Part shown: positions 10,363-60,725 of the stretch, piece by piece
How positions within the stretch are numbered: position 1 is the first letter of the stretch
How the letters are laid out: each line of letters opens with the position of its first letter
Assembly: GCA_038087875.1 (NCBI GenBank)
Contig: JAXLNO010003642.1
Span: 62,001 to 126,000, forward strand
Source of the DNA: Malacoraja senta
Taxonomy: Eukaryota
Length of the DNA stretch: 64,000 nucleotides
Direction of reading: 5' to 3'
The notes under the pieces: generated by a model
Databases searched by the model: none
What the model was told of the DNA's origin: nothing
The model's input: only the letters and a program-made list of their open reading frames with translations
Translations under genes and position numbers: made by a program

Positions 10363-10822
10363 GGAAGTGGGGTGTGTGGCGGGGGAGGGGAGGTGTGTAT
10401 GTGGGCGGGAGGAGTGTGGGAGGGGGGAGTGTGTGGGCAAGGGAGAGTGTTTGCACGGGGGACCGGTGTGTGGATAGGTGAGGGGATGGGTGAGGAGGGG
10501 ATGGGTGGGGGGTTTGTGGGGGGAGCGGTGTGTGGATGGGAGGGTTTGTGGGGGAGGGGGTGTGTGGGTGGGGATGTGGGGGGGGGGGTTGTGTGGCGAG
10601 AGGGGTGTGTGGGTGGGAGGGGATGTGGGGGGAGAGGGGGTTTGTGGGGAGGGGGGTGTGTGGGTGGGAGGGGATGTGGGGGGAGGGGGTGTGTGGGTGG
10701 GAGGGGTTATGGGGGGGATTGTGCGGGGAGGGGGGTGTGGGTGGGATGGGGGTTTGTGGGGAGGGGGGGGTGGGTGGGAGGGGTTATGGGGGGGTTGTGG
10801 GGTGTGTGGGCGGGGGGGAGGG
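10363..10822 (+). repeat. G-rich low-complexity repeat (GGGTGTGTGGG-like units)
   Basis: Dense G-runs; the long Gly-rich ORFs here are compositional. Confidence 0.9.
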
Positions 10823-11021
10823 GTAGAGAGCTCGGAGAAAATACAGGGGAAGAGCCATGGGAAGAAGGGGGTATCACGGGAGCCAGCGAGGGGGACCAGA
10901 GGGGTAGTGGCTGGAATTGGCAGTGCTATGGGGACTCACAGTGGTCGCTGGTCGTTCTCCTACGCTGGGATCAGTCTCCGCTTTCCATTTGGCGACATCT
11001 CCGACTCAACTCCATACACCG

Positions 11022-11397
11022 CCTCCCCCACACCCTCCTCCCCCCACAACCCCAACCTCGCCCCTCCCCCCACAACCCCCCTCCCCCCACACACCCTCCT
11101 CCCTCACACTCTCCTCCCCCCACAACCCACCTCCACCACACAACCCCCCCTCCTCCCCCCACAACCCAAACCCCGCCCCACCCCCCACAACCACCCCTCC
11201 TCCACACCCTCCTTCCCCCACAACCCCAACCCCCCCTCCCCCCACAACCCCAACCCCGCCCCTCCCCCCACAATCCCCCCTCCCCCCACACTCTCTTCCC
11301 CCACAACCCCAACCCCGCCCCTCCCCGCACAACCCCCTCCCCCCCCCACAACCCCAACCCCGCCCCTCCCCCCACAACCCCAACCCCAACCTCGCCC
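11022..11397 (+). repeat. C-rich low-complexity repeat (CCCCACAACCCCAACCCCGCCCCT-like units)
   Basis: Dense C-runs. Confidence 0.9.
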
Positions 11398-11913
11398 CGG
11401 AGGCTCAGCGATAGAGTTGCTGCCTTAACACTCCGGGTTCCAGAGTTTGTACATTCTCCCCATGGGTTTTATAGACAATAGATAATAGACAATAGGTGCA
11501 GGAGTAGGCCTTTCGGCCCTTCGAGCCAGCACCGCCATTCAATCTGATCATGGCTGATCATTTTCTCCGAGATCTTCGGTTTCCTTCCACACCAAATACT
11601 GGTTCGTAGGTTAATTGTGTTGGTATAAATGTAATTTGTCCCTCGTGTGGGTCTTGTGAGTCTGTGGAATTCTCCACCACAGAGGACGCTTCTCTGGAAA
11701 CTTTCAAGAGAGAGCAAGATCGAGCTCTTGAAGATAGCGGAGTCAGGGGATGTGGGGAGAAGGCAGGAGCATGGTACTCATTGTGGATGATCAGCCATGA
11801 TCACATTGAATGGCGGTGCTGGCTTGAAGGGCTGAATGGCCTACTCCTGCACCTATTGTCTATTGATAGTGTTAGTGTGCGGGGATTCCTGGTCGCTGGT
11901 CGGTGCGGACTAA

Positions 11914-23698: not shown

Positions 23699-24282
23699 CT
23701 AGGAATAGAAATTAAAAACAAAGTTTATTTTCAAGTTTGGAGGCTTATTAATTCTACTCACAGCTACTTATTTCACAACATACACGTCAAATTTACAAAT
23801 ATGTAATGCAGGATAGTCACTTTTCCATACTTCATATTTCCTTATGACATAGGCCATTTCAGCCCATCAAATCAATGCCAGCTCTCAGAGAATCCCAGTC
23901 CTTCACGAATTGTCCTTGAAACTAGTTCCTCACAAATTCCCATCAATTGCCCGCAGAATCCACCATTCAATTGAAAGCAAACTTCACTGAACTGTAGCAG
24001 CTTAACACCCAGAAGATGTGAAATGCAGGGAATTCTCTGTCCAAGTGACTACGGAGTCCAGAATTGAGACCAGTTCAACACTGAGATGACTGGCCTTAAT
24101 ATTACGTAATTGAGAGTATGGCCTTAAATGGTGCCGAGATAAATGGTCTGACTGAAAGGCAGAGCAGCTGAGGGCAGCATGGTGGAACCAGAGGCCCAGG
24201 TTCGATCCCACTACGGGTGCTATCTGTACGGAGTTTGTACATTCTCCCCGTGACCTGCGTGGACGTTCTCCAGGTGCTCCGG

Positions 24283-26172
24283 CTTTGGTATGAAAACGCT
24301 AAAGCCGCCTTTGGTTTGAAAACGCTAATGTTGCCTTTGGTTTGAAAACGCTAAAGCCGCCTTTGGTTTGAAAACGCTAAAGCCGCCTTTGGTTTGAAAA
24401 CGCTAAAGCCGCCTTTGGTTTGAAAACAGCTAAAGCTGCCTTTGGTTTGAAAACAGCTAAAGCTGTCTCGTTTGAAAACGCTAATGCTGCCTATGGTTTG
24501 AAAACGCTAAAGTTGCCTAAGGTTTTAAAACGCTATGTGGACAAAAGTGCTGGAGAAACTCAGCGGGTGTAGCAGCATCTATGGAGCGAAGGAAATGGGC
24601 AACGTTCCAAAACGCTATCGTTGCCTAAGGTTTGAAAACGCTAAAGTTGCCTTTGGTTTCTATTACTGGGCGACTAATATCAAAAACGTAATCTACTGGA
24701 TGGATGACACATGCCAACAGGTAAACTGGTTAAAAATGGAGAGGGAAGATTGTTTGCCTTTTAATATAGCGCAATTCTTCTTTCTCCAACACATCTGAAT
24801 AAATCAATGTATGAGCAAAATCCGATAATACACAGTACCCTACGCATTTGGAAACAGGTGAAATCAAACCTCAAACTGAGAAATTTCTCTCTCCTTTTAC
24901 CAATCGCTAATAAACCCTCGTTTAAACCGTCTAATTTAGATAAGGCGTTTGCACAATGGAAAAACTCAGGAATTTAAACGGTGGGAGATCTTTACGAGAA
25001 GGGGATTTTCCTCTCGTTTCAAGAATTACAGGAGAAATATCACTTGAAAGCAAGTAATTCTTTCAGATATCTTCAAATCCGAGACTATGTGAAAACATAT
25101 ACACAAGACTGTCACTCTATGGGTCCAGATATACTAGATGACTGCATGAATAGACATGTTGATACAAGCAAGTTAATATCCTACATTTACAATACTCTTT
25201 TAACTGCATACATCCCATCTTCTGAGAGGCATAGGCGAGCATGGGAATACAAATTGGGTTTATTAATTTCAAAAGATAGCTGGGAGGAAAGCCTTCTATA
25301 CATACACTACTGCTCTCTCAATGTTCGGCACTCCCTGATACAATTTAAAATACTGCATAGACTCTACTATTCAAAGACCAAATTAAACAAGATCTTCCCA
25401 AATGTCTCTCCTATTTGTGATAAATGTCTCTTCCAAAAAGCGACTATAACCCATTCATTTTCCTCCTGTATAAAGTTACAAAACTTCTGGAGGGGAATAT
25501 TTGATATCTTCTCCAAAATACTTAACATTAAATTGGAACCAGATATAAAACGGATCACTTTAGGTATGTCAGATGCCTGCTCTAAATTAACGACATTCCA
25601 AAGACGTTTCCTCAACTATGGCCTAATAACGGCGAAAAAATTAATACTCAAATTCTGGAAACAGATAACAGTCCCTACAGTGAAGATGTGGATTACTGAT
25701 GAGTCCGATACACAACATTTGGAAAATATTAGGTTTGTCTTGGCGGGAAAAGCAGATCAATTTCTTAAGACATGGTTCCCTTTTACTGAAATTCTGCAAC
25801 AACAGAATGGTTAAACACAAATTTAAACCCGATGCCAGGGATAGGTGAGGGGGGAAGGTATATTTCCTTTTTTTTTCTTATTTCTTTTCTTTCTCTTGCA
25901 CTTCTTTGGTACCTTAGGGTCTATTTTCTAGCTTGTTCTTATTTTACTTCTCTTTTGTCATTCTTTTATTTTCTCTCTCTTTTTTTTCGATTTAGGTTCT
26001 AACGTTAAAAATGAAGCTGTACAATAATTGTATAAGTGTTATGTTGATTGCCTTATCCTTGTATAATCGCTTCTAATAAAAGAAATTCAAAAATAAATAA
26101 ACCCGCTAAAGCTGCCTTTGCTTTCAAACCGCTAAAGCTGCCTTTGGTTTCAAAATGCTAAAGCTGCCTTTA
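24283..26172. repeat. 26-bp minisatellite CTTTGGTTTGAAAACGCTAAAGCCGC, interrupted by a Penelope piece and an L1
   Basis: About 10 units at 24283-24535, about 2 at 24608-24657 and about 3 at 26100-26172. Confidence 0.9.
24658..26098 (+). mobile_element. L1 LINE 3-prime fragment (ORF2 C-terminus, zf-RVT region)
   Basis: YYWAT, FRYLQIRDY, LIQFKILHR and CDKC..HSF..C; T-rich UTR, AATAAA and A-rich tail. Confidence 0.9.
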
Positions 26173-36569: not shown

Positions 36570-37050
36570 AATCCATCTGCAGCACTGATTAGAAACATAG
36601 AAAGCAGGTGCAGGAGTAGGTCATTAGGCCCTTCAAGCCAGCACCGTCATTCAATATGATCATGGCTGAGCATCCAGAATCAGTACCCTGTTCCTGCTTT
36701 CTCCCCATATCCCTTGATTCTGTAGCACTAAGATCTAACTCTCCCTTGAATACATCCAGTGAATTGCCTCCACTGCCTTCTGTGGCAGAGAATTCCACAG
36801 ATTCACAACTTTCTGGGAGAAAATGTTTTTCCTCATCTCAGTCCTAAATGGCCTACCCTTTATTCGTAAACTGTGACCCCTGGTTCTGGACTCCCCCAAT
36901 ATCGGGAAATTTTTTCCTGCATCTAACTGTCCAATCCCTAAGGAATTTTATGTCCCTAAGGAATTAATAAGATCCCATGTCATCCTAAATTCCAATGAAT
37001 ATAAGCCCAGTCAGTCCATTCTTTCATCACATGTTTGTCCTGCCATACCG
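36570..37050 (-). mobile_element. CR1 LINE 3-prime fragment
   Basis: Same UTR and tail as the other CR1 copies; partly inside the 562-bp duplication. Confidence 0.8.
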
Positions 37051-37930
37051 GGACAATAAATATTTTACTTTTTTATGAACAATATCCTTGATTTTATTGC
37101 TTTAAAAAAAAAATTATGTTCCAGTCCCACCACTAAGATTTTTGCTGTATAATTGTTTGGGTCCTTTCCGCCTTCAATCAATTGAAAGCCAGAGTGGTAA
37201 AGAAGCCATTATTCATAGCATTGAGTATAAGAGTCAGGAAGTCATATGCTGCTTTATGGAACTTCAAAGATAGACACAAAATGCTGGAGTAACTCAGCGG
37301 GACAGGCAGCATCTCTGGATAGAAGGAATGGGTGACATTTCTGGTTGAGTCCCTTCAGGCTGAAGAGGAACTTTCTGGGAGAAAATGTTTTTCCTCATCT
37401 CAGTCCTAAATGGCCTACCCTTTATTCGTAAACTGTGACCCCTGGTTCTGGACTCCCCCAATATCGGGAATTTTTTTCCTGCATCTAACTGTCCAATCCC
37501 TAAGGAATTTTATGTCCCTAAGGAATTATTAAGATCCCATGTCATCCTAAATTCCAATGAATATAAGCCCAGTCAGTCCATTCTTTCATCACATGTTTGT
37601 CCTGCCATACCGGGACAATAAATATTTTACTTTTTTATGAACAATATCCTTGATTTTATTGCTTTAAAAAAAAAATTCTGTTCCAGTCCCACCACTAAGA
37701 TTTTTGCTGTATAATTGTTTGGGTCCTTTCCGCCTTCAATCAATTGAAAGCCAGAGTGGTAAAGAAGCCATTATTCATAGCATTGAGTATAAGAGTCAGG
37801 AAGTCATATGCTGCTTTATGGAACTTCAAAGATAGACACAAAATGCTGGAGTAACTCAGCGGGACAGGCAGCATCTCTGGATAGAAGGAATGGGTGACAT
37901 TTCTGGTTGAGTCCCTTCAGGCTGAAGAGG
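36807..37930. repeat. 562-bp tandem duplication
   Basis: Copies 36807-37368 and 37369-37930; I count 3 substitutions by eye. Confidence 0.92.
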
Positions 37931-39329: not shown

Positions 39330-39381
39330 ATGCTTCTTTTTACCTTACTCAACACTTACGGTGTGGCCACTGTCTCCTCTG
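39330..39381 (+). CDS. MHC class I exon 1, signal peptide MLLFTLLNTYGVATVSS
   Basis: aaacATG context, 17 mostly hydrophobic codons plus G, donor GTAAGC. Phase 1 joins G+AT to give Asp1 of the mature protein. Confidence 0.8.
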
Positions 39382-42300
39382 GTAAGCAATGCTCCTTCTA
39401 CTTGTGAACTTTGAGGAAACAACAAAACTGATTCTATTTACTGTTGCACAGTCCCTGTGTTTGCCCTGGGTACATTGTCTTGGATGTATTAATTGAATGA
39501 TTGAATTGAATGTATTAATAATTTTGGGTAACGGTCTTTCCTTAGTTGTAAAGGCTCCTGTGGGAAGTTATATACACTATGGTTACCTTGGCAATCCAAT
39601 GAACAGAGGAACTGAATACAGGTAAATAATGAACATAGAACATAGGACAATACAGCACAGGAGCAGTTCCTTCAGTCCTTCAGTCTGAAGAAGGGTCTCG
39701 ACCTGAAACGTCACCCATTCCTTTTATCCAGAGATGCTGCCTGACCTGCTGAGTTACTCCAGCATTTTGTCTACCTTCGCCCACAATGTCTGTGCCGAAC
39801 AAAATAAACTAATCTCCTCTACCTGTATGTGATCTGTATCCGGCCATTCCCTGCCTATCTATGTACCTATCTAAAAGCCTCTGAAATGTAACTGTTATAT
39901 CTGCCACCACCATCACCACCACTGGCAGCGCAGTACAGGTGTCCACCACCCTCCACATAAAACAACTTGCTCCGCTCATCTCCTTTGAACATTGCTTCTC
40001 CAACCTTAAAGTGATGTTCTCTGGTCTTCAACATTTCCACCCTGGGAAAAAGGTTCTGGCTGTCCACTCTGTCTGTGCCTCTCACCATGTTATGCACTTT
40101 CATCAGGTCTCCCTTCAACCTCCAGTATACAAGAGAAAACAATCCATGTTTGTCCAATCTGTTCTTGCACTAATACCTCAGACAGAATTCAGGTAAACCG
40201 GTGATGTGCACTTTCAATAAAGAAGTGACTTCTGCATTAGTAGGTGTTCCACCTCTCCAAGATTTCCTCAGCTGGTGTTAGACACCCACATGATGGTAAA
40301 ATTCAGCCTGCATCAAATGACAAATCAATGTTGTGTTAATGTTGTTGCCATCTTGTTGTTTGTTGCATGCTTCCTGTACTGCAGACCCTATCCATTACAT
40401 CACCACCACTTCCATATAACCATATAATCATATAACCATTACAGCACGGAAACAGGCCATCTCGGCCCTTCAAGTCCGTGCCGAACACTTTTTTTTTCCT
40501 TCCCCCTTCTTTCTTCTTACTTCCCCCTAGTCCCATCTACCTGCACCCAGACCATATCCTTCCATTCCTTTCCCGTCCATATACACATCCAATCTATTTT
40601 TAAAGGATAAAATCGAACCTGCCTCCACCACTTCCACTGGAAGCTCATTCCACACAGCTACCACTCTCTGAGTAAAGAAGTTCCCCCTAATGTTCCCCCT
40701 AAACTTCTGTCCCTTAATTCTCAAGTCATGTCCCCTTGTTTGAATCTTCCCTACTCTCAATGGGAAAAGCTTATCCACGTCAACTCTGTCTAACCCGCTC
40801 ATAATTTTAAAGACCTCTATCAAGTCCCCTCTTAACCTTCTGCGCTCCAAAGAATAAAGCCCTAACTTGTTCAACCTTTCTCTGTAACTTAGTTGCTGAA
40901 ACCCAGGCAACATTCTAGTAAATCTCCTCTGTACTCTCTCTATTTTGTTGACATCCTTCCTATAATTAGGCGACCAAAATAGTACACCATACTCCAGAAT
41001 TGGCCTCACCAATGCCTTGTACAATTTTAACATTACATCCCAACTTCTATATTCAATGCTCTGATTTATAAAGGCCAGCACACCAAAAGCTTTCTTTACC
41101 ACACTATCTACATGAGATTCCACCTTCAGGGAACTATGCACAGTTATTCCTAGATCACTCTGTTCAACTGCATTCCTCAATTCGCTACCATTTACCATGT
41201 ACGTCCTATTTTGATTTGTCCTGCCGAGATGTAGCACCTCACATTTATCAGCATTAAACTCCATCTGCCATCTTTCAGCCCACTCTTCCAAATGGCCTAA
41301 ATCTCTCTGTAGACTTTGAAAATCTACTTCATTATCCACAACACCACCTATCTTAGTATCATCTGCATACTTACTAATCCAATTTTCCACACCATCATCC
41401 AGATCATTGATGTACATGACAAACAACAGTGGACCCAACACAGACCCCTGAGGCACCCCACTGGTCACCGGCCTCCAACCTGACAAACAGCCATCCACCA
41501 TTACTCTCTGGCATCTCCCATTCAGCCACTGTTGAATCCATCTTGCTACTCCACCATTAATACCGAACAATTGAATCTTCTTAACCAACCTTCCACGAGG
41601 AACCTTGTCAAAGGCCTTACTGAAGTCCATATAGACAACATCCACTGCTTTACCGTCATCAATTTCGCTAGTAACCTCTTCGAAAAATTCAAGAAGATTA
41701 GTCAAACATGACCTTCCAGGCACAAATCCATGTTGACTGTTCCTAATCAGACCCTGCTTATCCAGATGCTTATATATATTATCTCTAAGTATCCTTTCCA
41801 TTAATTTGCCCACCACTGACGTCAAACTAACAGGTCTATAATTGCTTTGTTTACTCTCACAACCCTTTTTAAACAACGGAACAACATGCGCAGTACGCCA
41901 ATCCTCCGGCACTATTCCTGTTTCTAATGACATTTGAAATATTTTTGTCATAGCCCCTGCTATTTCTACACTAACTTCCCTCACTGTCCTAGAAAATATC
42001 CTGTCAGGACCTGGAGACTTATCCATTTTCATATTTTTCAAAAGTGTCCGCACCTCCTCTTATTTGAATCTCATAGTTTCCATTGCTACTCTGCTTGTTT
42101 CCCTTACCTCACATAATTCCATATCCTTCTCCTTGGTGAATACCGAAGAAAAAAAATTGTTCAATATCTCCCCCATCTCTTTTGGCTCTGCAGATAGCTG
42201 TCCACTCTGACTCTCTAATGGACCAATTTTATTCCTTGTTATCCTTTTTCTATTAATATAGCTGTAGAAACCCTTTGGATTTACTTTCACCTTACTTGCA

Positions 42301-45300
42301 AAAGCAACCTCATATCTTCTTTTAGCTTTTCTAATTTATTTCTTAATATTCTTTTTATATTCTTTATACTCCTCAAGCACCTCATTTACTCCATGCTGGC
42401 AATTATTATTGTAGATCTCTCTCTTTTTCCGAACCAAGTGTCCAATTTCCCTTGAAAACCATGGCTCTTTCCAATTTTTACTATTTCCTTTCAACCGAAC
42501 AGGGACATAAAGATTCTGTACTCTTAAAATGTCACCTTTAAATGTCCTCCATTTCTCTACTACATCCTTCCCATAAAACAACATGTCCCAATTCACTCCT
42601 TTTAAATCCTTTCGCATCTCCTCAAAGTTAGACTTTCTCCAATCAAAAATTTTAACCCTAGGTCCAGTTCTGATCCTCTCCATAATTATATTGAAACTAA
42701 TGGTATTGTGATCACTGGACCCGAAGTGCTCCCCAACGCCCACCTCCGCCACCTGCCCTGTCTCATTTCCTAACAGGAGGTCCAGCATTGCCCCTTCTTT
42801 AGTAGGTACCTCTATGTATTGCTGCAAACAACTATCCTGCACACATTTTACAAATTCCAAACCATCCAGCCCTTTTACAGTATGTGTTTCCCAGTCTAAG
42901 TGTGGAAAATTGAAATCTCCCACAATCACTACCTTGTGCTTACTACTAATATCTGCTATCTCCTTACATATTTGCTCTTCCAATTCTTGCTCCCCATTAG
43001 GCAGTCTATAATACACCCCTATATGTGTTGCTACACCTTTCCCATTTCTCAGTTCCACCCAAATAGCCTCCCTAGACGAGCCCTCTACTCTATCCTGCCA
43101 AAGCACTGCTGTAATATCTTCCTTGACAAGCAATGCAACACCCCTACCTCTTGACCCTCCAATTCTATCACACCAGAAGCAACGAAATCCTGGAATATTT
43201 AGTTTCCAATCACAGCCCTCCTGCAACCATGTGTCACTGATCGCCACAACAACATACTTCCAGGTGTCAATCCAGGCTCTATCCACGACTTCCCCAGAAG
43301 ACGATAATGAGATTTAAGAAGCTTGAGGATAGGCACGTGGATATGTAGGGACTTGAGGGATATGAATCATGTACAAGCAGTTTAGTTTAACTTGACATCA
43401 TGTTCGGCACAGACATTGTGGCTGAGCTCTAACCCATTACACCCTTAATGAACAAAAATATATCAATCTAAATCTGGAAATTTTCAAGTGGGCGACATAT
43501 TCAACAGATTACAGAATCGAGAACCAGAAGACATAGGTTTAAATTGAGGGGGGGGGGGAGATTTAATGGGAATCTGATGAGCAATTTCTTCCCACACAAT
43601 GCTTCCTTTCTAACTATTCTGACAATCGTGAAGGCTTGGAGATTACAAACCTACTCATCCTGAAAGTTTAATCCCATTGTTATCAGATGAAAGTAAATAT
43701 AAAATGGTGATTCCCCTGTTGAAATAATAACATATAAAACAAAAATCCTTGGTTGTGGAGTGTTTTGGGAAGTCACGTGGATTTTATCATTACTGTATTC
43801 CACTAGCCTTCTTATGTTTCTCCTGGTAACACTGAAACAGACACTTCTAACTCTCCCTTTGGGGCCCCTTCTCACCTCACTTTGACACTGAACTTTGACA
43901 CTGTCTGGTGTGCTGCATGGAAACTTTATCACAGAACAAATACTGCTTATTCATGTAGAAACAAGAAAATGCAGATGCTGGTTAATACACATAAAATGCT
44001 GGAGTAATTCAGCAGGTCAGGCAGTATGTCTGGAGAACATGGATAGGTGATGTTTCAGTTTAGACATCAGTTTAGATGTGTAAGAAGGAACTGCAGATGC
44101 TGATTTAAACCGAAGATAGACACAAAAAGCTGGAGTAACTCAGCGGGACAGGCAGCATCTCTGGAGAGACGAAATGGGTGATGTTTCGCGTCTAGACCCT
44201 TCTTCAGACTGGTGATGCAGATGCTGGTTTACACCGAAGATAGACACAAAAAGCTGGAGTAAATCAGGAAGTCAGGCAGCATCGCTGGAGAAAAGGAATA
44301 GATGGCGTTTCAGGTCAAGGCACTTCTTCAGACAGAGTCGGAGGTATATTTTTTATTAATTTGTTCTATGTACCTTTTCATATCGCTTGGTTCCCTGTCT
44401 CCTGATTCTCAGTCTGAAGAAGGGTCTCGACCCGAAACGTCACCTTTTCCTTTTCTCCGGAGATGCTGCCTGACCCACTAAGTTACTCCAGTATGTGTCG
44501 AGTTTCAGTTTAGACCCTGTTTATTATAGTCTGCTCCGACCCCACCCCCACCCCCCACCCCACCCAAGCCTTGATAGTCGGGACTCATCAGTAAGGTCTT
44601 CTTTACACTTACTGTTACAGAATCCCAATGTCCTCATAAGTCAGAAGTGCCCCATTCCATGCAGAGATTTCCCACCAGATGGGCATTGCAGGGTTGCAGC
44701 TCATAGAGATGGTGCCTATGAGGACCTGGACTCAATCCCGATCTCTACTACAACCTGTGTGGCACTTTTATTCTTTCCCTGAAACCATGTGTGCTTCCTC
44801 TGGTTATTCCAGTTTCTCCCAATATTCCAAAGATGAGAGGCTGAGAGGTAAATTGGCCAGTGTGAATTGATCGTACATACTGTGACCTCCATAATGTTTC
44901 GGACAAAGACCCATCATATATTTATTTGCCTCTGTACTCCATAATTTGAGATTTGTAATAGAAAAAAATCACATGTGGTTAAAGTGCACATTGTCAGATT
45001 AAAAAAAAGGCAATTTTTTAAACATTTTGGTTTCACCATGTAGAAATTACAGCAGTCAATTTACATAGTCACAAAATACATAGTCTGCCCCATTTTAGGG
45101 CACCATAATGTTTGGGACACAGCAATGTCATGTAAATGAAAGTAGCCATGTTTAGTATTTTGTTGCATATCCTATGCATGCAATGACTGCTTGAAGTCTG
45201 TGATTCATGGACATCGCCAGTTGCTGGGTGACTTCTCTGGCGATGCTCTGCCAGGCCTGTATTGCAGCCTGTGCTTGTTTTGGGGGCTAGTCCCCATTCA

Positions 45301-48300
45301 GTTTTCTCTTTGGCATATCAAAGGCATGCTCAGTTGCGTTCAGATCGGGTGATGGTCTTGGCCACTCAAGAATTAACAATTTTTTAGCTTTGAAAAACTC
45401 CTTTGTTGCTTTAGGATCATTGTCTTGCTGTAGTATGAACCGCTGGGCAATGTGTTTTGAGGCCAATGTGTTTGAACTTGAGCATATAGGATGTGTCTAT
45501 ACACTTCAGAATTCATTATGCTGCTACCATCAGTAGCTGAATGGTCAACAAAGCTAAGTTAGCCAGTACCTTCAGCAGCCATACATGCCCAGCCCACAAC
45601 ACCCCCACCACCGTGTTTCACAGATGAGGTGGTATGCTTTGGATCTAGGGCAGTTCCTTCTCTCCTCCATACTTTGCTCTTGGCATCACTCCGATATAAG
45701 TTAATCTTTGTATCATCTGTCCAGAAGACCTTTTTCCAGAACTGTGGTTGCTCTTTTAAGTACTTCTTGGCAAACTGTAACCTGGCCATCCTGTTTTTGC
45801 GGCTAAACAGTGGTTTGCATCTTGCAGTGCAGTCTCTGTATTTCTGTTCATGAAGTCTTCTGCGGACAGTGGTCATTGGCAAATCCACACCTGACTCCTG
45901 ATGAGTGTTTCTGACCTGTCAGTCCCTTTGCGATTAGTAAAGGATTGGGGTTTTGTCTTTATTATAGAGAGAAGTCTTCTGTCATCAGCTGTGGAGGTGT
46001 TCCTTGGCCAGCCAGTCCCTTTGCGATTAGTAAGCTCAAAGTGCTCTCTTTCTTCTTAATGATGTTCCAAACAGTTTGATTTTGGTAAGCCTAAGGTTTG
46101 GCTGATGTCTCGAACAGTTTTATTCTTGTTTCTCAGTCTCATAATGGTCTCTTTTACTTTCATTGGCACAACTCTGGTCCTCCTGTTGATGAACAGCAAT
46201 AAAAGTTTCCAAAGGTGATGGAAAGACTGGAGGAAAGACTAGATGCTGAGTTCTCTTATACCTGCATTAAGGAGGCATTTAAATACCCCTGAGCAATTAC
46301 ATACATCTGCGAAGCCATGTCCCAAACATTATGGTGCCCTGAAATGGGGGGACTATGTATAAACACAGGTGTAATTTCTACATGGTGAAACCAAAATGGG
46401 CAAAAAATGAATACATAAGTTTAAAATGAGGGGGGAAAGATTTAATAAGAACCAGAGGCATAGCTTTGGTGGGAGTACTGAATGAACTGCCGGAGAAGGG
46501 AGTTCAGGCAGGTACTATCGCAACATTTAAGAAACATTTAATCTGGTACATGGATAGATAGGTTTAGAAGGATATGGGCCTCCTCAGACAGCCGTGGAGC
46601 CCACGTCAATGGATATTTCTCAGGTGGATATTGACAGATTCTTGATCAGTATGGGTGTCAAGGGTTATGGGGCGAAAGCAGGGAATGTGGTTGAGAGGGC
46701 GAGATAGAGCAGCCATGATTGAATTAGGCCATTCAGCCGTAGGCCCTGATTCCCTGCTGTATGACTCTTTGACTTTACCTCTCTATGATTTTATAAAATC
46801 TCCTTGACGTTGTCCATTTTCTTAATATAATAAAATATTCTTTGAATTTTGGAATATTGTAACTAGTAGGCTGTATCGACATGATAGATAATAATAGATC
46901 TTTGAAGATGGGAAGCAATCCAATAGGATCATTCAATACCTCGACCACAATTGGTGGAATAGGTATCAGAGCCCATCTAGCCAACTCTTGTAGAAGGCTC
47001 AGTGGTGCAGCATTAGAGATGCTGCCTTATCGCCCTTACAGCACCAATGCCCAGGTTGGATCCTGACTACGGGTCCTGTCTGTATGGAGTTTGTACATTC
47101 TCCACCTGACCGGGTGGGTTTTTCCTGAGATCTTCAGATTCTTCCCACATTCCATGACGTACAGGTTTGTAGTTTAATTGGCTTGGTGTAGAATGTAAAT
47201 TGTCCCTTGTGTGTGTAGGATAGTGTTAGCGTGTGGGGGTTGCTGGTCAGTGTGGACTCAGTGGCCCGAAGGGCCTGTTTCCATGCTGTATCTCTAAGCT
47301 AAAAACTAAACTAAAGGCTCCTGACACAAATTGTCACCTGATCATTGATGCTGCCTGCCCCACTGAGTTCATCCAGCACTTGCATCTGCAGGTCCTTGTG
47401 ACTCCCTTATTCAAAGTTATTGTATTGTTATCAGTTTTAGCATTAATAACTTAGTTATTTTCAGTGAATGATACAATCATACTTATTTTTGTTTATGCAT
47501 TGCAGATTTTCACCATCTTGCATTTTACTACCTGTTGAACCATGGATTGAGTGTGCTGCCTGAGTACAGTATGGTAGCAATGTTGGATGACCTCCAGATA
47601 GCATATTTTGACAGCACACTAGAGCGGGCTATTCCCAGACAGCGATGGATGGCCCAGTCTTTCCCGCAGGATCAATGGGATTCAATGGCCATCACAGTTG
47701 CAGGTTTTCATGGGATTGTCAGAGGAAATGCTGAGATAGTCTACCAACAGCAACATGGTATCTCGAGTAAGTGTCGTGACCGGACCTGGGGTAGACACCC
47801 AGTGATGGCACAAATGGATTTTGTTTTAGTTTTGTTGCTGTCACATGATTCTCTGATACACTTTTTTTGCATGTTAGTCAATCACATCAAAGAAAACTAT
47901 TCATAAATACAATCAAACCAAACTCGTACAATAGGTAGAGCAAAGAGTGCAGAATGTAGTTCTCAGCATTGTAATGTACCAGTGCCAGAGACAAAGTCCA
48001 GTGTCTACAATGGGGTTGAGGTGAACCCTAGCATAAGGGAGGACTGTTCAGAAACCTGATAACATAGGGGAGGAAACAGTTACTGAGTCTGGTGGTGCAC
48101 GCTTTAATGCTTACGTACCTTCTGCAGGAAGAAGAAGGAATGACCAGAGCGGGATGAATCTTTGATTATGTTGTCTGCTTTCCTGAGCCAGTTGAAATAC
48201 AGATGGATTCACTGGTGGGGAATCATGTTTGTGTGATCGATTGTGCTACATCTCCACCTCCCTGCCATTTCCAGCGGTATTGGGCAGAACTCTTTCCAAA

Positions 48301-51300
48301 CTAAGTTGTGATGCAACCTGTCAGTGTGCTTTCTATGGCACATTTGTAGAAGTTTGTAAGAGTCATTGGAGATGCCGCATTTCCTTAGTCTCCTGAGGCA
48401 GTAGGGGAACCAGAAACTCTCAACCTTTTTCACTTCAGCACCATTGATGCTGTTTCAGACATTTACTCCATCACATTTTGATAGAGACACGGCCCATCGT
48501 CTATATTTAATGTGTCCTAACTGCTGAACACCCATTGATAACAGTTGGCTGGTGATAGTCTCTTTATGGGTTAAGCATTTGATATTTAACACCAGTAAAA
48601 AGTGGATGGATTGGATCATCTGTTTTATTGGGCTGGAATGAGGGAGAAACCATAGTTTATTTATAGCCTGATCACCTAGAGATGGGACCTTGATTAAGCT
48701 GGTTGATGGTGACTATGATGTATTCCCTCAACAATAATATTCTGTTAATCCAGCATTCCCTCAATATTGGCAACAATCCACAGAGAGTGTAGCAATCCCA
48801 CACAGTGCAACAGCCTTGATGTACTTCCCATCTGCATTGCCTTAACCTTCAGACTGACCTGTTCACTGTATAACATTGCCCATCTGACAATGCACTCCTT
48901 CCTCTGTTCTTTATGTACGAAAGTGCAGAATCTGAGTTCTACCCTTCTGACACAGCAAAACTTCTTTAGTGTTACATCCGCAACAGTAAAGCTTCCCCCC
49001 TCAACACTTGAGGTTAGTCCATGCCCTCAGTATATAGACCATGGGTCATTGAGTCACACATCATGGAAACCGGCCCTTCTGCTCACTGAATCCACATTGA
49101 TCATCATTTGTACTAAGATGGAGTCACAGCAAACTGCAGATGCTGCCAATCTGAATTAAAAACAAACAGGAGGAACTCAACGAGTCAGGCAGCATGCTGT
49201 GGAAAAATGGACAGAAAACATATGAGACCAGGACCATTTAGAGTGATGGAGTAGGGTGGAGAAAGCTGGAAAATAAAAGTAGTCTGTGTAGGATACTGTT
49301 AATGTGCGGGGATCACTGGTCAGTGCGGACTCGGTGGGCCGAAGGGCCTCTTTCCGCGCTGTATCTCTGAGCTAAACCTGCTCCTATGCTGTACAGCTCC
49401 ATGTTGTGTTCTGTTATGCCTGTTTGTACCATGCTGAGAACTGATTTGTAAATTGCCTCTCCCTTCCATCCACTCTCCCCAACACAAATCCTCCACCCCT
49501 ACCTCAGCCCCAGCTGTTTGCTTTGTGCAGGGTTTCTGCGGCTGTGAAGTGGACAGTGACAATTCCACTGATGGGTTTGTCAGACTGGGTTATGATGGGG
49601 AGGATGCCTGTGCTTTTGACAAGGACAGAATGCGCTGGATTGCACTACGTCCAGATTTCCAGATGCTAGCAGATCGGTGGAACGTCAACACCTTCATGAA
49701 CAAGTATTTTAAAGATCTCCTGGAGAAGGACTGTGTGAAGTGGCTGCGGATATATCTGGAGTGTGGACAAGAAGCACTACAGAGGAGAGGTACACGACGT
49801 AGGCACTCTGACTGATGGGCCAGAGGATATCCTCTGGATAGATCAGGTGGGAAATATCATGCACTTCAGGCTGTCACTTGAGTAATTATTTAGTTTAGTT
49901 TAGTGATACAGCGCGGAAACCCACCGAGACCGCACCGAGCAGCCATGCCCGCACACTAACACTATCCTACACACACTAGGGACAATTTGCATTTATACCA
50001 ATCCAATTAACCTACAAATTTGTACGTCTTTCGAGTGTGAGGGGAAACCGAAGATCTCGGATAAAACCCACGCAGGTCACAGGGAGAACGTACAAACTCT
50101 GTAAAGACAAGCACCCGTAGTTAGTAACAAACCCAGGTCTCTGGCGCTGTAAGGCAGTAGCTCGACCGCTTCGCCACCCTGTTCTACAACGTGGGTATCA
50201 GTAAATTGTCTGGCAACGTGCCTCTTAGATGGAGCCAGTGGGTAGGAAGTGCAAGTGAAAGATAAATATTGTACCAGTGTCCTCTATCCACAGTCATATA
50301 GATATTCAGGAAATGGAGGGATATGTATCTTGGTCTTATGTTTAGCATTGACCTTGTGCCTGAAGTGTCTGTTGCTGCGCTGATCAGAAACCCAATCAGA
50401 TTCTCTATTTGCCTCTATTACTCCTTGGGATGGTGACATCCAATTTCCAACAGTTCTCTGGTTGAAGAACTTCTTCCTCCCATTCCCTCTTGGAATATTT
50501 AGTGTTATTATTCAGCTGAGATTCATGAACAAGTAGAAGCAATCATGTCTACAGTATCAATCCCAATGGTGAGTTATACTCCTCCATTGGGCCTGCATTC
50601 CCCTTACATCTGCGCTGTCAGTTCAAGTCTGGAGCTAAGATAAGGAGCATGTCAGTGATATTAAAACTAAATGTTTTGTTGTTTTGCCAGAAATGCAAAA
50701 TGAAAAGAGAAAAGGCTGTAAACTGTGTGCAAGATAGAACTGCAGATGCTGGTTTACACTGAAGATAGAAGATGTTGGAGTAACTCAGTGGGTCAGATAG
50801 CATCTCTGGGCATTCCTTCTCTCCAGAGATGCTGCCTGACCTGCTGAGTTATTCCAGCATTTTGGGTCTAGGCTGGAAACTTTGTTCAGCTGGAGAAAAA
50901 ACTGATTGGGAAAGAGGTGAGTTGCAGTGATCTTACAATTGAAGGCTTTTGTTCATGTCTTCACTGATTGTGACGCTTCCTACACTTGCAGAAACCCCTG
51001 AGGTGTTTATTGGGATTAAACGTGATGGGTCACAATCACTGAGACTCTCCTGCCTTGTCACAGGCTTCTACCCACGGGCCATCGATGTAACGTGGCTGAG
51101 AGATGGTGAGGGAGACCACGAGTCTGAATCCAGTGATCTGTTGCCCAATTGGGATGGGACTTACCAGCTGAAGAATACAATTCAACTGAGTAGAGAAGAT
51201 GTGGCAAAATTCTCCTGTTACATTGAACATGCAACTCTGCTGCAGGGAGTCAATGTTCCACAGGGTAAGTGGCAAGTCAATGAGGCTGATCACTTGAGAG

Positions 51301-54300: not shown

Positions 54301-54672
54301 TCCATCGTCTGGACAATTACATAAATCTAAGACTTTGTTACTTTTTATTTAGATGTGAACAATGCTAGTTTAATGTAGATAATAAAATCATTTCAAAGTC
54401 ATAATTGATCAATAAATGTTTAAAATGAACTATATATGCCAACAGAGATGGCAGCGAAAGAAGATATAAAGATTAGGATCGTGACTGGAGCTGTAATCGT
54501 TCCTCTCTTTCTCCTGGGGATCATCCTTGGAATTGGTTGCTGGAAGAAGAGGAAAAAGATAAAACCTTTCAATGAACAGGGACCAGCTGACAACAGCAGA
54601 GACCAGGAGACGACTGCAGTGACCATGAAGCACAATCAACTTCCATTGGGATGCAGAGGTCTACCGGAATGA
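39330..54672 (+). CDS. Non-classical MHC class I heavy chain gene, 5 coding exons, 362 aa
   Basis: Exons 39330-39381, 47506-47766, 49514-49789, 50992-51264 and 54446-54672 are all GT-AG and phase 1. They sum to 1089 nt in one open frame: leader, alpha1, alpha2, alpha3 (C1-set Ig), TM plus cytoplasmic tail. Lineage not assignable without a search. Confidence 0.93.
39685..39712 (+). ncRNA. Minimal hammerhead core with a G-U closing pair in stem II
   Basis: CTGAAGAAGGGTCTCGACCTGAAACGTC. Confidence 0.4.
40412..43281 (-). mobile_element. CR1 LINE, 5-prime truncated ORF2 (APE endonuclease and RT), antisense in MHC intron 1
   Basis: ORF 42336-43286 (VGDFNFP, SSDH) and an uninterrupted 508-aa RT/C-terminal ORF 40527-42053; ATATGGTT-type tail; frameshifts between the domains. 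Confidence 0.95.
44414..44441 (+). ncRNA. Minimal type I hammerhead ribozyme core (Penelope-derived)
   Basis: CUGAAGA-A-GGGUC/UC/GACCC-GAAA-C-GUC; palindromic ACGU stem III; only 2 bp of stem I. Confidence 0.5.
44880..46405 (-). mobile_element. Tc1/mariner element, decayed, in MHC intron 1
   Basis: TVRRRL, ARLQFAK, WTDDTK, VKHGGG, WPRPSPDLNATEH and C-terminal GYATKY. Long IR with CCATAATGTTTGGGACA repeats; right IR truncated. Confidence 0.9.
46998..47312 (+). mobile_element. HE1-type SINE, full length, just upstream of the alpha1 exon
   Basis: tRNA head, body and CTAAACTAAA tail. Confidence 0.8.
47506..47766 (+). CDS. MHC class I exon 2, alpha1 domain
   Basis: Acceptor ttgcag, donor gtaagt, 261 nt. 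DFHHLAFYY..PEYSMVAMLDDLQIAYFDS..RAIPRQRWM..QWD matches the class I alpha1 pattern. Confidence 0.93.
49514..49789 (+). CDS. MHC class I exon 3, alpha2 domain
   Basis: 276 nt, the canonical length. Contains QGFCGCE, GYDGED, RW and DCVKWLRIYLECGQEALQR, with the C101-C164 pair conserved. Confidence 0.95.
49885..50178 (-). mobile_element. HE1-type SINE
   Basis: Same family, antisense in MHC intron 3. Confidence 0.8.
50992..51264 (+). CDS. MHC class I exon 4, alpha3 Ig C1 domain
   Basis: 273 nt with LSCLVTGFYPRAIDVTWLRDG, LLPNWDGTYQ and FSCYIEH; acceptor ttgcag, donor gtaagt. Confidence 0.95.
51362..52005 (-). mobile_element. Two tandem HE1-type SINEs (51362-51670 and 51735-52005)
   Basis: Two heads and two tails, antisense in MHC intron 4. 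Confidence 0.8.
52010..52810 (+). mobile_element. CR1 LINE 3-prime fragment in MHC intron 4
   Basis: IYRALVKTHLEYCEQFWAPY and the downstream CR1 UTR. Confidence 0.85.
53354..53367 (+). promoter_or_regulatory. CTCF-like motif
   Basis: CCAGCAGGGGGCGC matches the CTCF core consensus. Confidence 0.45.
53370..54195 (+). mobile_element. CpG-rich non-autonomous retroelement with LINE-type 3-prime tail, in MHC intron 4
   Basis: Ends GTGACAAATAAAATATCTTGAATCTTGAATCT; its ORFs are antisense/GC artefacts. Confidence 0.55.
54446..54672 (+). CDS. MHC class I exon 5, connecting peptide, TM and cytoplasmic tail to stop
   Basis: Acceptor aacag, phase 1. TM IVTGAVIVPLFLLGIILGIGCW is followed by basic KKRKK; TGA at 54670-54672. 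Confidence 0.85.
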
Positions 54673-58036: not shown

Positions 58037-59318
58037 TTAACACAGATTCAATAATTTCGCAATGTAAAACCATCCATCAACATACATAGATCGCACTTTT
58101 GTAAGATCTGGGGCCTTCATGATCGGGTACCTCTGCCGTGAAAACACAACCCTGACATCCCCTGTTTGCTTTTGATCCTCAAAACACATTGTCCTGGTGC
58201 GGATCAGGTTATGGAGGACACATGCCGCGTAGACAATGGCCTGCACATTCTCGGGCTCCTGCTCCATTGTTGTAAGCAGGCATCTGAATCTGCTAGCAAG
58301 GATACCAAAAGCATTCTCCACTACCCTCCTAGCCCTGGACAGCCTGTAATTGAAGATCCTTTGCTCCCTTGACACCCCCCCTGTGAGGGTATGGCTTCAT
58401 CATCCATGGCCTGAGTGCAAAGGCATCATCACCAACCAGTGCGTAGGGGATGTCAGGGATGTCAGGGTTGTCTTCTCCAGGCAGAGGTTCTGGATCCGGA
58501 AGGCCTGCTCTCCCTTCTTCCAATGCTTGCCCAAGGGAGGTCTCTCTCCAGATCCCTCCATCTGCGGCACTGCCAGGTGTGCCCACATTCACAAACATGA
58601 AGTTGTAGTTTGCATCTACCACAGCTAACAGCACGATGGAATGGAACTTCTTGTAATTAAAGTACACAGAACCTCCCCCGGGTGGACACCGGATGGCCAC
58701 ATGCTTCCCGTCAACAGCCCCACATGTGTGCAGGAAGTTCCATCTGCTTTGAAAGCCGTGCGCCACACTCCTCCACCCGTCTGGTGTAGTTGGGCAGTCA
58801 ATAAGCTCATCATATGTTTTGTTGATGGCATCACACGTCTCTCGGACTACACCGCTGATGGTGTTGTGAGCCACGCGGAAGTTGTACGACAGGCTCTTGT
58901 AGGAATCCCCTGATGCAAGGTAGCGGAGGGTGATGGCTAGGCGCAGGCCTGGTTCCAGTGACTTCCGCATGACGGTGTCCATTTTCTGCAGTAGAGGTCC
59001 GACTCGTGTCTTGAGCTCCTGAAACAGGTCAGGCGGGATCCTGGTGAAATTTCTAAAGGCAGCATCATCTACCCGCTGCAGATCCGTCATCATGGTCTCA
59101 TACTGGCCCAAAGTAGGTCTCATCAGGAACAAAGGCCTCATCCACACAGACCTCTTCCTGGGCTTCTTCTTCATAACCTTCTTTGTTGAACTGCTGCACG
59201 GATGACCTGCAACCATGATGGCTGCTGCTAAGAGAAGATTATGTTGGTGTAGCAGCAATGCAATGTCAATGTCTTCCATTGTGCAGTAGTTTACAGGTCC
59301 TAATCGAGTTTGCTGCAA
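58037..59318 (-). pseudogene. Harbinger DDE transposase (HARBI1/DDE_Tnp_4-like) with one frameshift
   Basis: [47 protein letters not shown] and CVLHN. The frame breaks at the C-run near 58375-58381. Confidence 0.92.
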
Positions 59319-60490: not shown

Positions 60491-60725
60491 CCTCTTTGTT
60501 CTCGGCAGCCCCTCCATGTTGGGTTCACCTGTGTTATCAACGGCCCCCCAACCCCGGGACCATCTTTGTTCTCGGCAGCCCCTCCATGTTGGGTTCACCT
60601 GTGTTATCAACGGCCCCCCAACCCCGGGACCATCTTTGTTCTCGGCAGCCACTCCATGTTGGGTTCACCTGTATTATCAGCCCCCCCCCCCCCCACCCCG
60701 AGACCCTCTTTGTTCTCGGCAGTCC
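60491..60725. repeat. 70-bp minisatellite, about 3.3 units
   Basis: TCTTTGTTCTCGGCAG starts at 60493, 60563, 60633 and 60707. Confidence 0.9.

Follow-up and report, generated by a model that had tools for sequence, protein, structure and literature searches.

An intact class I-like gene of the skate Malacoraja senta from a UGA-sister lineage with an apolar, conserved groove and a possible hydrophobic ligand

Among living vertebrates, sharks and rays are the oldest to possess a major histocompatibility complex (MHC). Two of their nonclassical class I molecules, UFA and UGA, have been named as CD1-like, lipid-binding and single- or low-copy (PMC12562908, PMC10751288), UFA being called CD1-like in PMC10751288, and a personal communication in the review PMC12562908 states that crystal structures and mass spectrometry show lipid binding by both. 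Each is represented by a PDB entry titled as a shark nonclassical MHC class I molecule, UGA by 9CH4 (released 2026-03-18) and UFA by 8GM8 (nurse shark; released 2024-11-27). Here, we analysed a 64,000-nt stretch of Malacoraja senta DNA, hereafter the window (contig JAXLNO010003642.1, positions 62,001 to 126,000 of the forward strand), in which a first-pass annotation had marked positions 47506-49789 as an intact nonclassical class I molecule with a hydrophobic, probably non-peptide groove. We find that this span holds two of the five coding exons of a complete class I-like gene, which falls in a shark-and-ray lineage sister to UGA and whose product may hold one conserved kind of hydrophobic ligand.

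When the alpha1 domain was searched against 1.84 billion representative proteins, one near-identical match emerged, the partial RefSeq protein P0001 of the little skate Leucoraja erinacea, at 94% identity. With P0001 as query, a single orthologue cluster per species was retrieved from 11 species other than skates, with identities of 54-72%: the rays Pristis (72%), Hypanus (67%) and Mobula (66%), and the sharks Pristiophorus, Heptranchias, Scyliorhinus, Stegostoma, Hemiscyllium, Mustelus, Cetorhinus and Chiloscyllium (54-60%). Beyond these orthologues, identity to P0001 falls sharply, and no other class I protein exceeds 36%. The M. senta ectodomain is 92% identical to its L. erinacea counterpart, 79% to that of sawfish and 62-68% to those of sharks. 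In a maximum-likelihood tree of 57 proteins (LG+C20 PMSF), made alongside a quick tree of 103 rows, four clades stood at 100/100 each, namely the M. senta lineage, UGA, UFA and a classical/UBA-like clade. The M. senta lineage was sister to UGA (97/86), UFA joined the pair at 91/75, and within the M. senta clade rays split from sharks (99/96), as orthologues should. Judged by its sequence, the gene belongs to a low-copy lineage that is older than the shark-ray split and sister to UGA.

The first-pass annotation had been unable to say whether the gene represented a known lineage or a new one, a question that is now largely answered by this distinct group, which is already present in NCBI. There, its members carry the automatic name "MR1-like" because alpha2 resembles MR1, and a curated lineage name was found on none of the 86 relatives collected, among which were no Squalus acanthias entries. 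The sawfish orthologue LOC127585976 lies between B2M/BRD2 and COL11A2/RXRB, beside three F10-like MHC-Ib genes that are probably UGA-type and near UFA-type genes, and is labelled just 'MHC-Ib' in the supplement of PMC10751288 (2023). We found neither a name nor a description of the UGA-sister lineage in accessible papers; it is a lineage present in NCBI annotation yet unnamed in accessible literature. The gene is a new member of the known family of nonclassical class I genes with greasy grooves in sharks and rays, and not a new kind of molecule.

Other named lineages fit less well. Classical UAA-like identity is excluded by the separate 100/100 classical-like clade, outside which the gene stands in the phylogeny. 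UEA is multicopy and expanded in sharks, to which the one gene per shark species seen here is a poor fit, a comparison made with UEA by description only; shark UEA and UCA were not covered in detail in the accessible papers. UDA reportedly keeps eight of the nine residues that anchor peptide termini, a pattern that the M. senta gene, with two to three kept, does not match; a protein with the eight-of-nine, UDA-like pattern (P0161) was placed elsewhere in the tree.

Among described molecules, the gene is most like UGA. Besides the sister-clade relationship, the best PDB sequence match of alpha1 is 9ch4_A (79.7 bits), the groove residues L5, Y9, T66, F70, G97, L116, A123, W147, M152, Y155, F156, L159, L160, D163 and Y171 are shared, and in sawfish the two occupy a common MHC-Ib cluster, provided that the F10-like genes are indeed UGA-type. 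By contrast, the ectodomains are 38-42% identical and form two separate clades, and UGA has Y7, Y59, K146, F99 and polar or charged residues at 67, 80 and 84, whereas the M. senta lineage has F7, H/Q59, R146, C99 and an all-apolar 67/80/81. We considered 9CH4 as a possible orthologue and rejected it: the orthologue from zebra shark, P0149, has an identity to 9CH4 of just about 45% and scores 214 bits against it, compared with 466 bits for the UGA-type sawshark protein P0009; its PDB title also rules out 9CH4 as UDA. UFA, whose 8gm8_A chain is a more distant sequence match, shares the wider tree group, the sawfish cluster, G97 and the alpha1 motif MLDDLQI-YFDS, but is 27-31% identical, forms its own clade, lacks the GCE and YDG motifs of alpha2, has several copies in rays, and ends in a hydrophobic, tail-less C-terminus where the M. 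senta gene has a conventional transmembrane segment and polar tail.

The remaining comparisons are more distant. With mammalian and avian CD1 the gene shares an apolar groove, a beta-2-microglobulin (beta2m)-type architecture and an expected low polymorphism, by analogy only, with 24% identity to a CD1b-like protein, a tail that lacks an endosomal Y-x-x-hydrophobic signal, and no claim to orthology. Chicken YF1*7.1 (PDB 3P73, 9EB2-9EB6), which presents N-acyl amino acids and lipopeptides in a narrow hydrophobic groove of class I type, is the best solved analogue for acyl chains in a class I-shaped groove, but it belongs to an independent avian lineage at 29% identity, and from the M. senta lineage the F-pocket anchors, too, are gone. 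MR1 resembles the gene in alpha2 (64 bits) and in having alpha1-alpha2 more conserved than alpha3, and differs in that the M. senta lineage has apolar residues where MR1 has Lys43 and its polar ligand contacts.

The M. senta gene comprises five exons on the + strand with a 364-residue open frame free of stops and frameshifts, in which leader, alpha1, alpha2, alpha3 and transmembrane segment with tail occupy one exon per domain, with AG/GT borders throughout and phase 1 joins. Exon 1 (39330-39381) contains the start codon and a 17-residue signal peptide followed by the donor G|GTAAGC, and the codon split between exons 1 and 2 encodes Asp1 of the mature chain. This leader was located by tblastn with the leaders of shark orthologues (P0145, P0147; 76% identity, E 1.5e-6) and sits 8.1 kb upstream of the alpha1 exon, the distance being intron 1. 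Exon 2 (47506-47766, 261 nt) encodes alpha1, mature residues about 1-88, and exon 3 (49508-49789, 282 nt) encodes alpha2 with the Cys101-Cys164 pair, an extra Cys99 and the sole N-glycosylation sequon of the ectodomain (N-S-T). The alpha2 acceptor at 49508 is backed by an upstream FVQG strand conserved in all orthologues, which rules out a shorter alpha2 exon from 49531, and reading through the intron past the alpha2 donor meets a stop after 10 codons. Exon 4 (50992-51264) encodes an immunoglobulin C1-set alpha3 domain, and exon 5 (54446-54672; acceptor AG at 54444-54445, stop codon at 54670-54672) encodes the connecting piece, the transmembrane helix, the basic stop-transfer sequence KKRKK and, as predicted from genomic DNA, a polar tail of ~37 residues.

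The domain assignments agree with this gene structure. Pfam recognized MHC_I in alpha1 (E 7e-5, alone below the gathering score) and alpha2 (E 2e-16) and C1-set in alpha3 (E 5e-15), and a PDB sequence search matched alpha1 at E 1e-21 and alpha2 at E 6e-17, far beyond chance, while alpha3 matched class I and CD1 alpha3 domains. The protein thus has a class I architecture, with an MHC_I platform, the Cys101-Cys164 pair, a C1-set alpha3 with its own cysteine pair, and the beta2m contacts Q96, D119, G120 and D122. With the core protein as query, tblastn found no second class I gene in the window.

Whether this copy is still maintained was judged against its relatives. At the 111 positions invariant in the other twelve lineage members, the M. 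senta copy keeps 108, and its three private changes compare with 0-6 in other species, in agreement with a copy that, as read from sequence, is intact and without sign of decay. The call of an intact class I gene thereby extends from the two exons first marked to the whole gene. The L. erinacea locus L001 (JAMYXN010000384.1; 100-151 and 12983-18999) contains all five exons, with a leader of 100% protein identity about 9.9 kb upstream of alpha1, a long intron 1 as in M. senta, and exon 5 and its reading frame retained despite indels. The dN/dS between the two species is about 0.47, a figure based on few substitutions (13 synonymous and 22 non-synonymous). The RefSeq model P0001 omits the conserved leader exon of L001 and extends alpha2 by 12 codons of the following intron, where M. 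senta has a stop; this 12-residue stretch was dismissed as an intron read-through, with a predicted local distance difference test (pLDDT) score of 46 and a disordered state in the AlphaFold2 (AF2) model. L. erinacea also has a fragmentary second copy (P0156).

A simple scan of the 1 kb upstream of the start codon gave two CCAAT boxes and one gamma-activated site (GAS)-like site, too weak for interpretation, and neither an interferon-stimulated response element (ISRE) nor an NF-kB consensus. Sequencing runs that match words of the gene also match words of its introns and therefore have no bearing on transcription.

To read the groove, we numbered the protein after HLA by the landmarks H3, P20, D29/D30, F36-D37, P47-R48, W51, W60, C101, Y118-D119-G120, W133, W147, C164, W167 and Y171, which agrees with the HMMER ranges for H-2Kb (query 17-59 against chain 19-62) and HLA-B27 (query 6-92 against chain 95-181); positions 45 and 152 hinge on the placement of one-residue indels. 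All residue calls made earlier by eye were reproduced, including F7, Q59, Q84, A123, L143, R146, W147, L159 and Y171 at the peptide anchors, the apolar M24, M63, V67, F70, I73, V74, I80, V81, V95, V114, L116, M152, F156 and L159 in the groove, and the beta2m contacts Q96 and D119-G120-E-D122. Two of the nine listed anchors, W147 and Y171, are kept unaltered and R146 is a conservative change (K146R), and, together with the position outside the classical clade, this upholds the nonclassical assignment. Q59 is private to the M. senta copy, with H59 in 12 of 12 orthologues.

We then compared the lining of pockets A-F, taken as 35 positions after HLA class I, in an alignment that is less certain for UFA and CD1. 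The groove of the M. senta lineage is 71% apolar and 9% charged with a mean hydropathy of 1.47, the most apolar among the groups compared, the others being UGA (57% apolar, 13% charged, 0.75), shark UFA (53%, 12%, 0.78), the classical-like clade (54%, 16%, 0.24) and a CD1b-like protein (57%, 17%, 1.15). Across the lineage, from skates to sharks, 18 of these 35 residues do not vary (L5, F7, Y9, T66, N77, Q84, V95, G97, C99, A123, L143, R146, Y155, F156, L159, L160, D163 and Y171), and changes at the other positions are mostly apolar for apolar. Between rays and sharks, identity is 75% in the groove, 68% in the remaining alpha1-alpha2 and 57.5% in alpha3. A platform more conserved than alpha3 is the pattern of molecules with a conserved ligand, such as MR1.

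For the L. erinacea ectodomain, AF2 modelling with 76 aligned relatives gave pLDDT values of 92-98 across alpha1-alpha2. The model overlaid best with UGA (9CH4; Z 28.2, root-mean-square deviation 1.7 Å over 267 residues), followed by peptide-binding class I molecules (Z 26-27), chicken YF1*7.1 (Z 26.3-26.4) and MR1, with Mamu-B*098, solved with a lipopeptide, also among the close structural matches and no CD1 chain among the 50 best. This ranking suggests that the fold is probably an open class I platform of UGA/classical rather than CD1 type. The likening to CD1-type molecules in the first-pass annotation, whether as kinship or as fold subtype, is accordingly not upheld by either the sequence identity or the structural matches.

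The tails separate the three related lineages. In all 13 members of the UGA-sister lineage, the transmembrane helix is followed by a basic stop-transfer and a polar tail with no Y-x-x-hydrophobic motif, and a tail motif Q-Q-G-x-A-E-x-S recurs in both rays and sharks. By contrast, among 17 UGA-type tails examined, 10 have Y-x-x-I/V at the C-terminus, for example YNAV, YNVI, YQNI and YENI (proteins P0243-P0253, P0230). UFA-type proteins (P0016, P0257-P0269) show a short hydrophobic C-terminus without a cytoplasmic tail, the layout of a glycosylphosphatidylinositol (GPI)-anchor signal. As far as the sequences tell, the three lineages thus bear three distinct membrane and sorting signatures.

One groove residue stands apart. 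Cys99 (codon 49535-49537), in a C-G-C motif on the floor strand near Cys101, is invariant in 13 of 13 lineage members, with Phe at this position in UGA and Trp or Leu in UFA, and sharks of the lineage have no conserved partner cysteine for it. Batoids carry extra cysteines at about 124 and 174, and a Cys found in the M. senta copy alone lies four residues ahead of Q96. It could be imagined that Cys99 is a free groove-facing thiol for the covalent or redox capture or sensing of a ligand, a thiol counterpart of the Lys43 trap of MR1, coupled to a three-way division among UGA, UFA and the UGA-sister lineage, but we hold this combined proposal to be very unlikely. If true, the endosomal tyrosine motif of UGA, the tail-less end of UFA and the plain tail of the UGA-sister lineage would amount to a division of labour among class I molecules with greasy grooves.

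Taking the composition, conservation and predicted fold of the groove together, we lean, by a little, towards an intact UGA-sister class I molecule whose groove carries a hydrophobic non-peptide ligand of one conserved kind. On this reading, a type I membrane heavy chain would probably pair with beta2m, because the contacts Q96 and D119-G120-x-D122 are kept, and would probably fold into an open class I platform. The hydrogen-bond clamps for peptide ends are lost (Y7F, Y59H/Q, Y84Q, T143L and Y159L), and the groove would be lined by small residues (G97, A123, A34 and A45) and by aliphatic or aromatic side chains, such that a lipid tail, an acylated small molecule or a lipopeptide may be accommodated and shown to T or natural killer (NK)-type cells. 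Because the tail, unlike that of most UGA, lacks a tyrosine sorting signal, the ligand would be picked up along the secretory pathway or on the cell surface, and not in late endosomes. The earlier proposal of a lipid or hydrophobic-ligand presenter thus stands as far as the groove is concerned, which is apolar, conserved and in keeping with the lipid binding reported for UFA and UGA and with chicken YF1*7.1, while the ligand itself is one that we infer. Several points weigh against a hydrophobic non-peptide ligand: the model is about equally close to lipid binders, peptide-type class I and MR1, with CD1 chains missing from its best 50 matches; apolar groove residues would be equally conserved if the helices packed shut; the dN/dS value draws on few changes; and the report of lipid binding, a personal communication (PMC12562908), concerns other lineages, UFA and UGA.

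The groove could also serve unconventional peptide presentation, in which short, very hydrophobic or N-terminally modified peptides are held without the usual clamps on their termini, much as H2-M3 presents N-formyl peptides and HLA-E/Qa-1 leader peptides. That peptide-binding class I molecules (Z 26-27) follow UGA among the structural matches, that W147, Y171, Y155, D163 and, for K146, R146 are kept, and that strong groove conservation would suit a fixed ligand set of either kind all speak for such a role, but hydrogen-bond donors have gone from both the A pocket (F7, H/Q59 and L159) and the F pocket (Q84, L143 and A123), whereas H2-M3 departs from the clamps at one groove end only, and charged residues make up just 9% of groove positions. 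We regard this as possible, though unlikely. Slightly less probable is a ligand-free molecule acting through its outer surfaces, like its FcRn, HFE, MIC or ZAG-type relatives: class I relatives without a ligand are common and mutually packing hydrophobic residues would stay conserved too, but the model overlays open-groove molecules at 1.7-2.3 Å over 267 residues, the small floor residues G97, A123 and A34/45 widen the cavity rather than fill it, the groove is more conserved than the remaining platform, and the sister UGA is reported as a lipid binder (PMC12562908).

Two further readings concern the name that the orthologues carry and the state of the M. senta copy. A shark and ray counterpart of MR1, binding small polar metabolites through a Schiff base, might be read from alpha2, the best PDB sequence matches of which are MR1 chains (64 bits), yet MR1 Lys43 aligns with Ala, which rules out an MR1-like function, the ligand set maps as Y7 to F, R9 to Y, Y62 to M, W69 to F, R94 to G, Q153 to F and W156 to L, with only Y152 kept, and the tree groups the lineage with UGA and UFA; such a counterpart is thus highly improbable. 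We also judge it quite unlikely that the M. senta copy goes unused within an otherwise functional lineage, either silent or a recent duplicate in decay. The 8.1-kb intron 1 with a long interspersed nuclear element (LINE) and a Tc1 remnant and the fragmentary second copy in L. erinacea would suit such a fate, but the five exons are open with canonical splice sites, the three private changes at 111 invariant positions lie within the range of other species, dN/dS is below 1, and a long intron 1 is likewise found in the L. erinacea orthologue.

The surroundings of the gene are rich in repeats. Inside intron 1, on the - strand, lie the LINE with reverse transcriptase and endonuclease open reading frames of 508 and 316 residues (40527-43286) and a Tc1/mariner transposase remnant (45287-46199), and downstream of the gene, also on the - strand, is a 329-residue open reading frame of DDE_Tnp_4, a Harbinger-type transposase (58329-59318). 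A G-rich degenerate tandem array (10457-10823) is followed ~200 bp later by its C-rich reverse complement (11033-11387), an inverted pair that accounts for the block of 61% G+C and the long spurious open reading frames at 10372-11481. Two other tandem arrays have a 26-bp unit in 9.9 copies with 89% match (24279-24535) and a 70-bp unit in 3.2 copies with 92% match (60493-60722). Upstream of the leader exon, a short peptide-coding match occurs twice, 562 bp apart (36848-36880 and 37410-37442), suggesting a local tandem duplication.

With UFA and UGA recently proposed as lipid presenters, a CD1-like function would be moved back about 450 million years. The M. senta gene represents a third lineage of the UFA/UGA group, and the groove of this lineage surpasses those of UFA and UGA in apolar character and conservation. 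If a hydrophobic non-peptide ligand is indeed held there, early jawed vertebrates may already have had several specialised non-peptide presenters.

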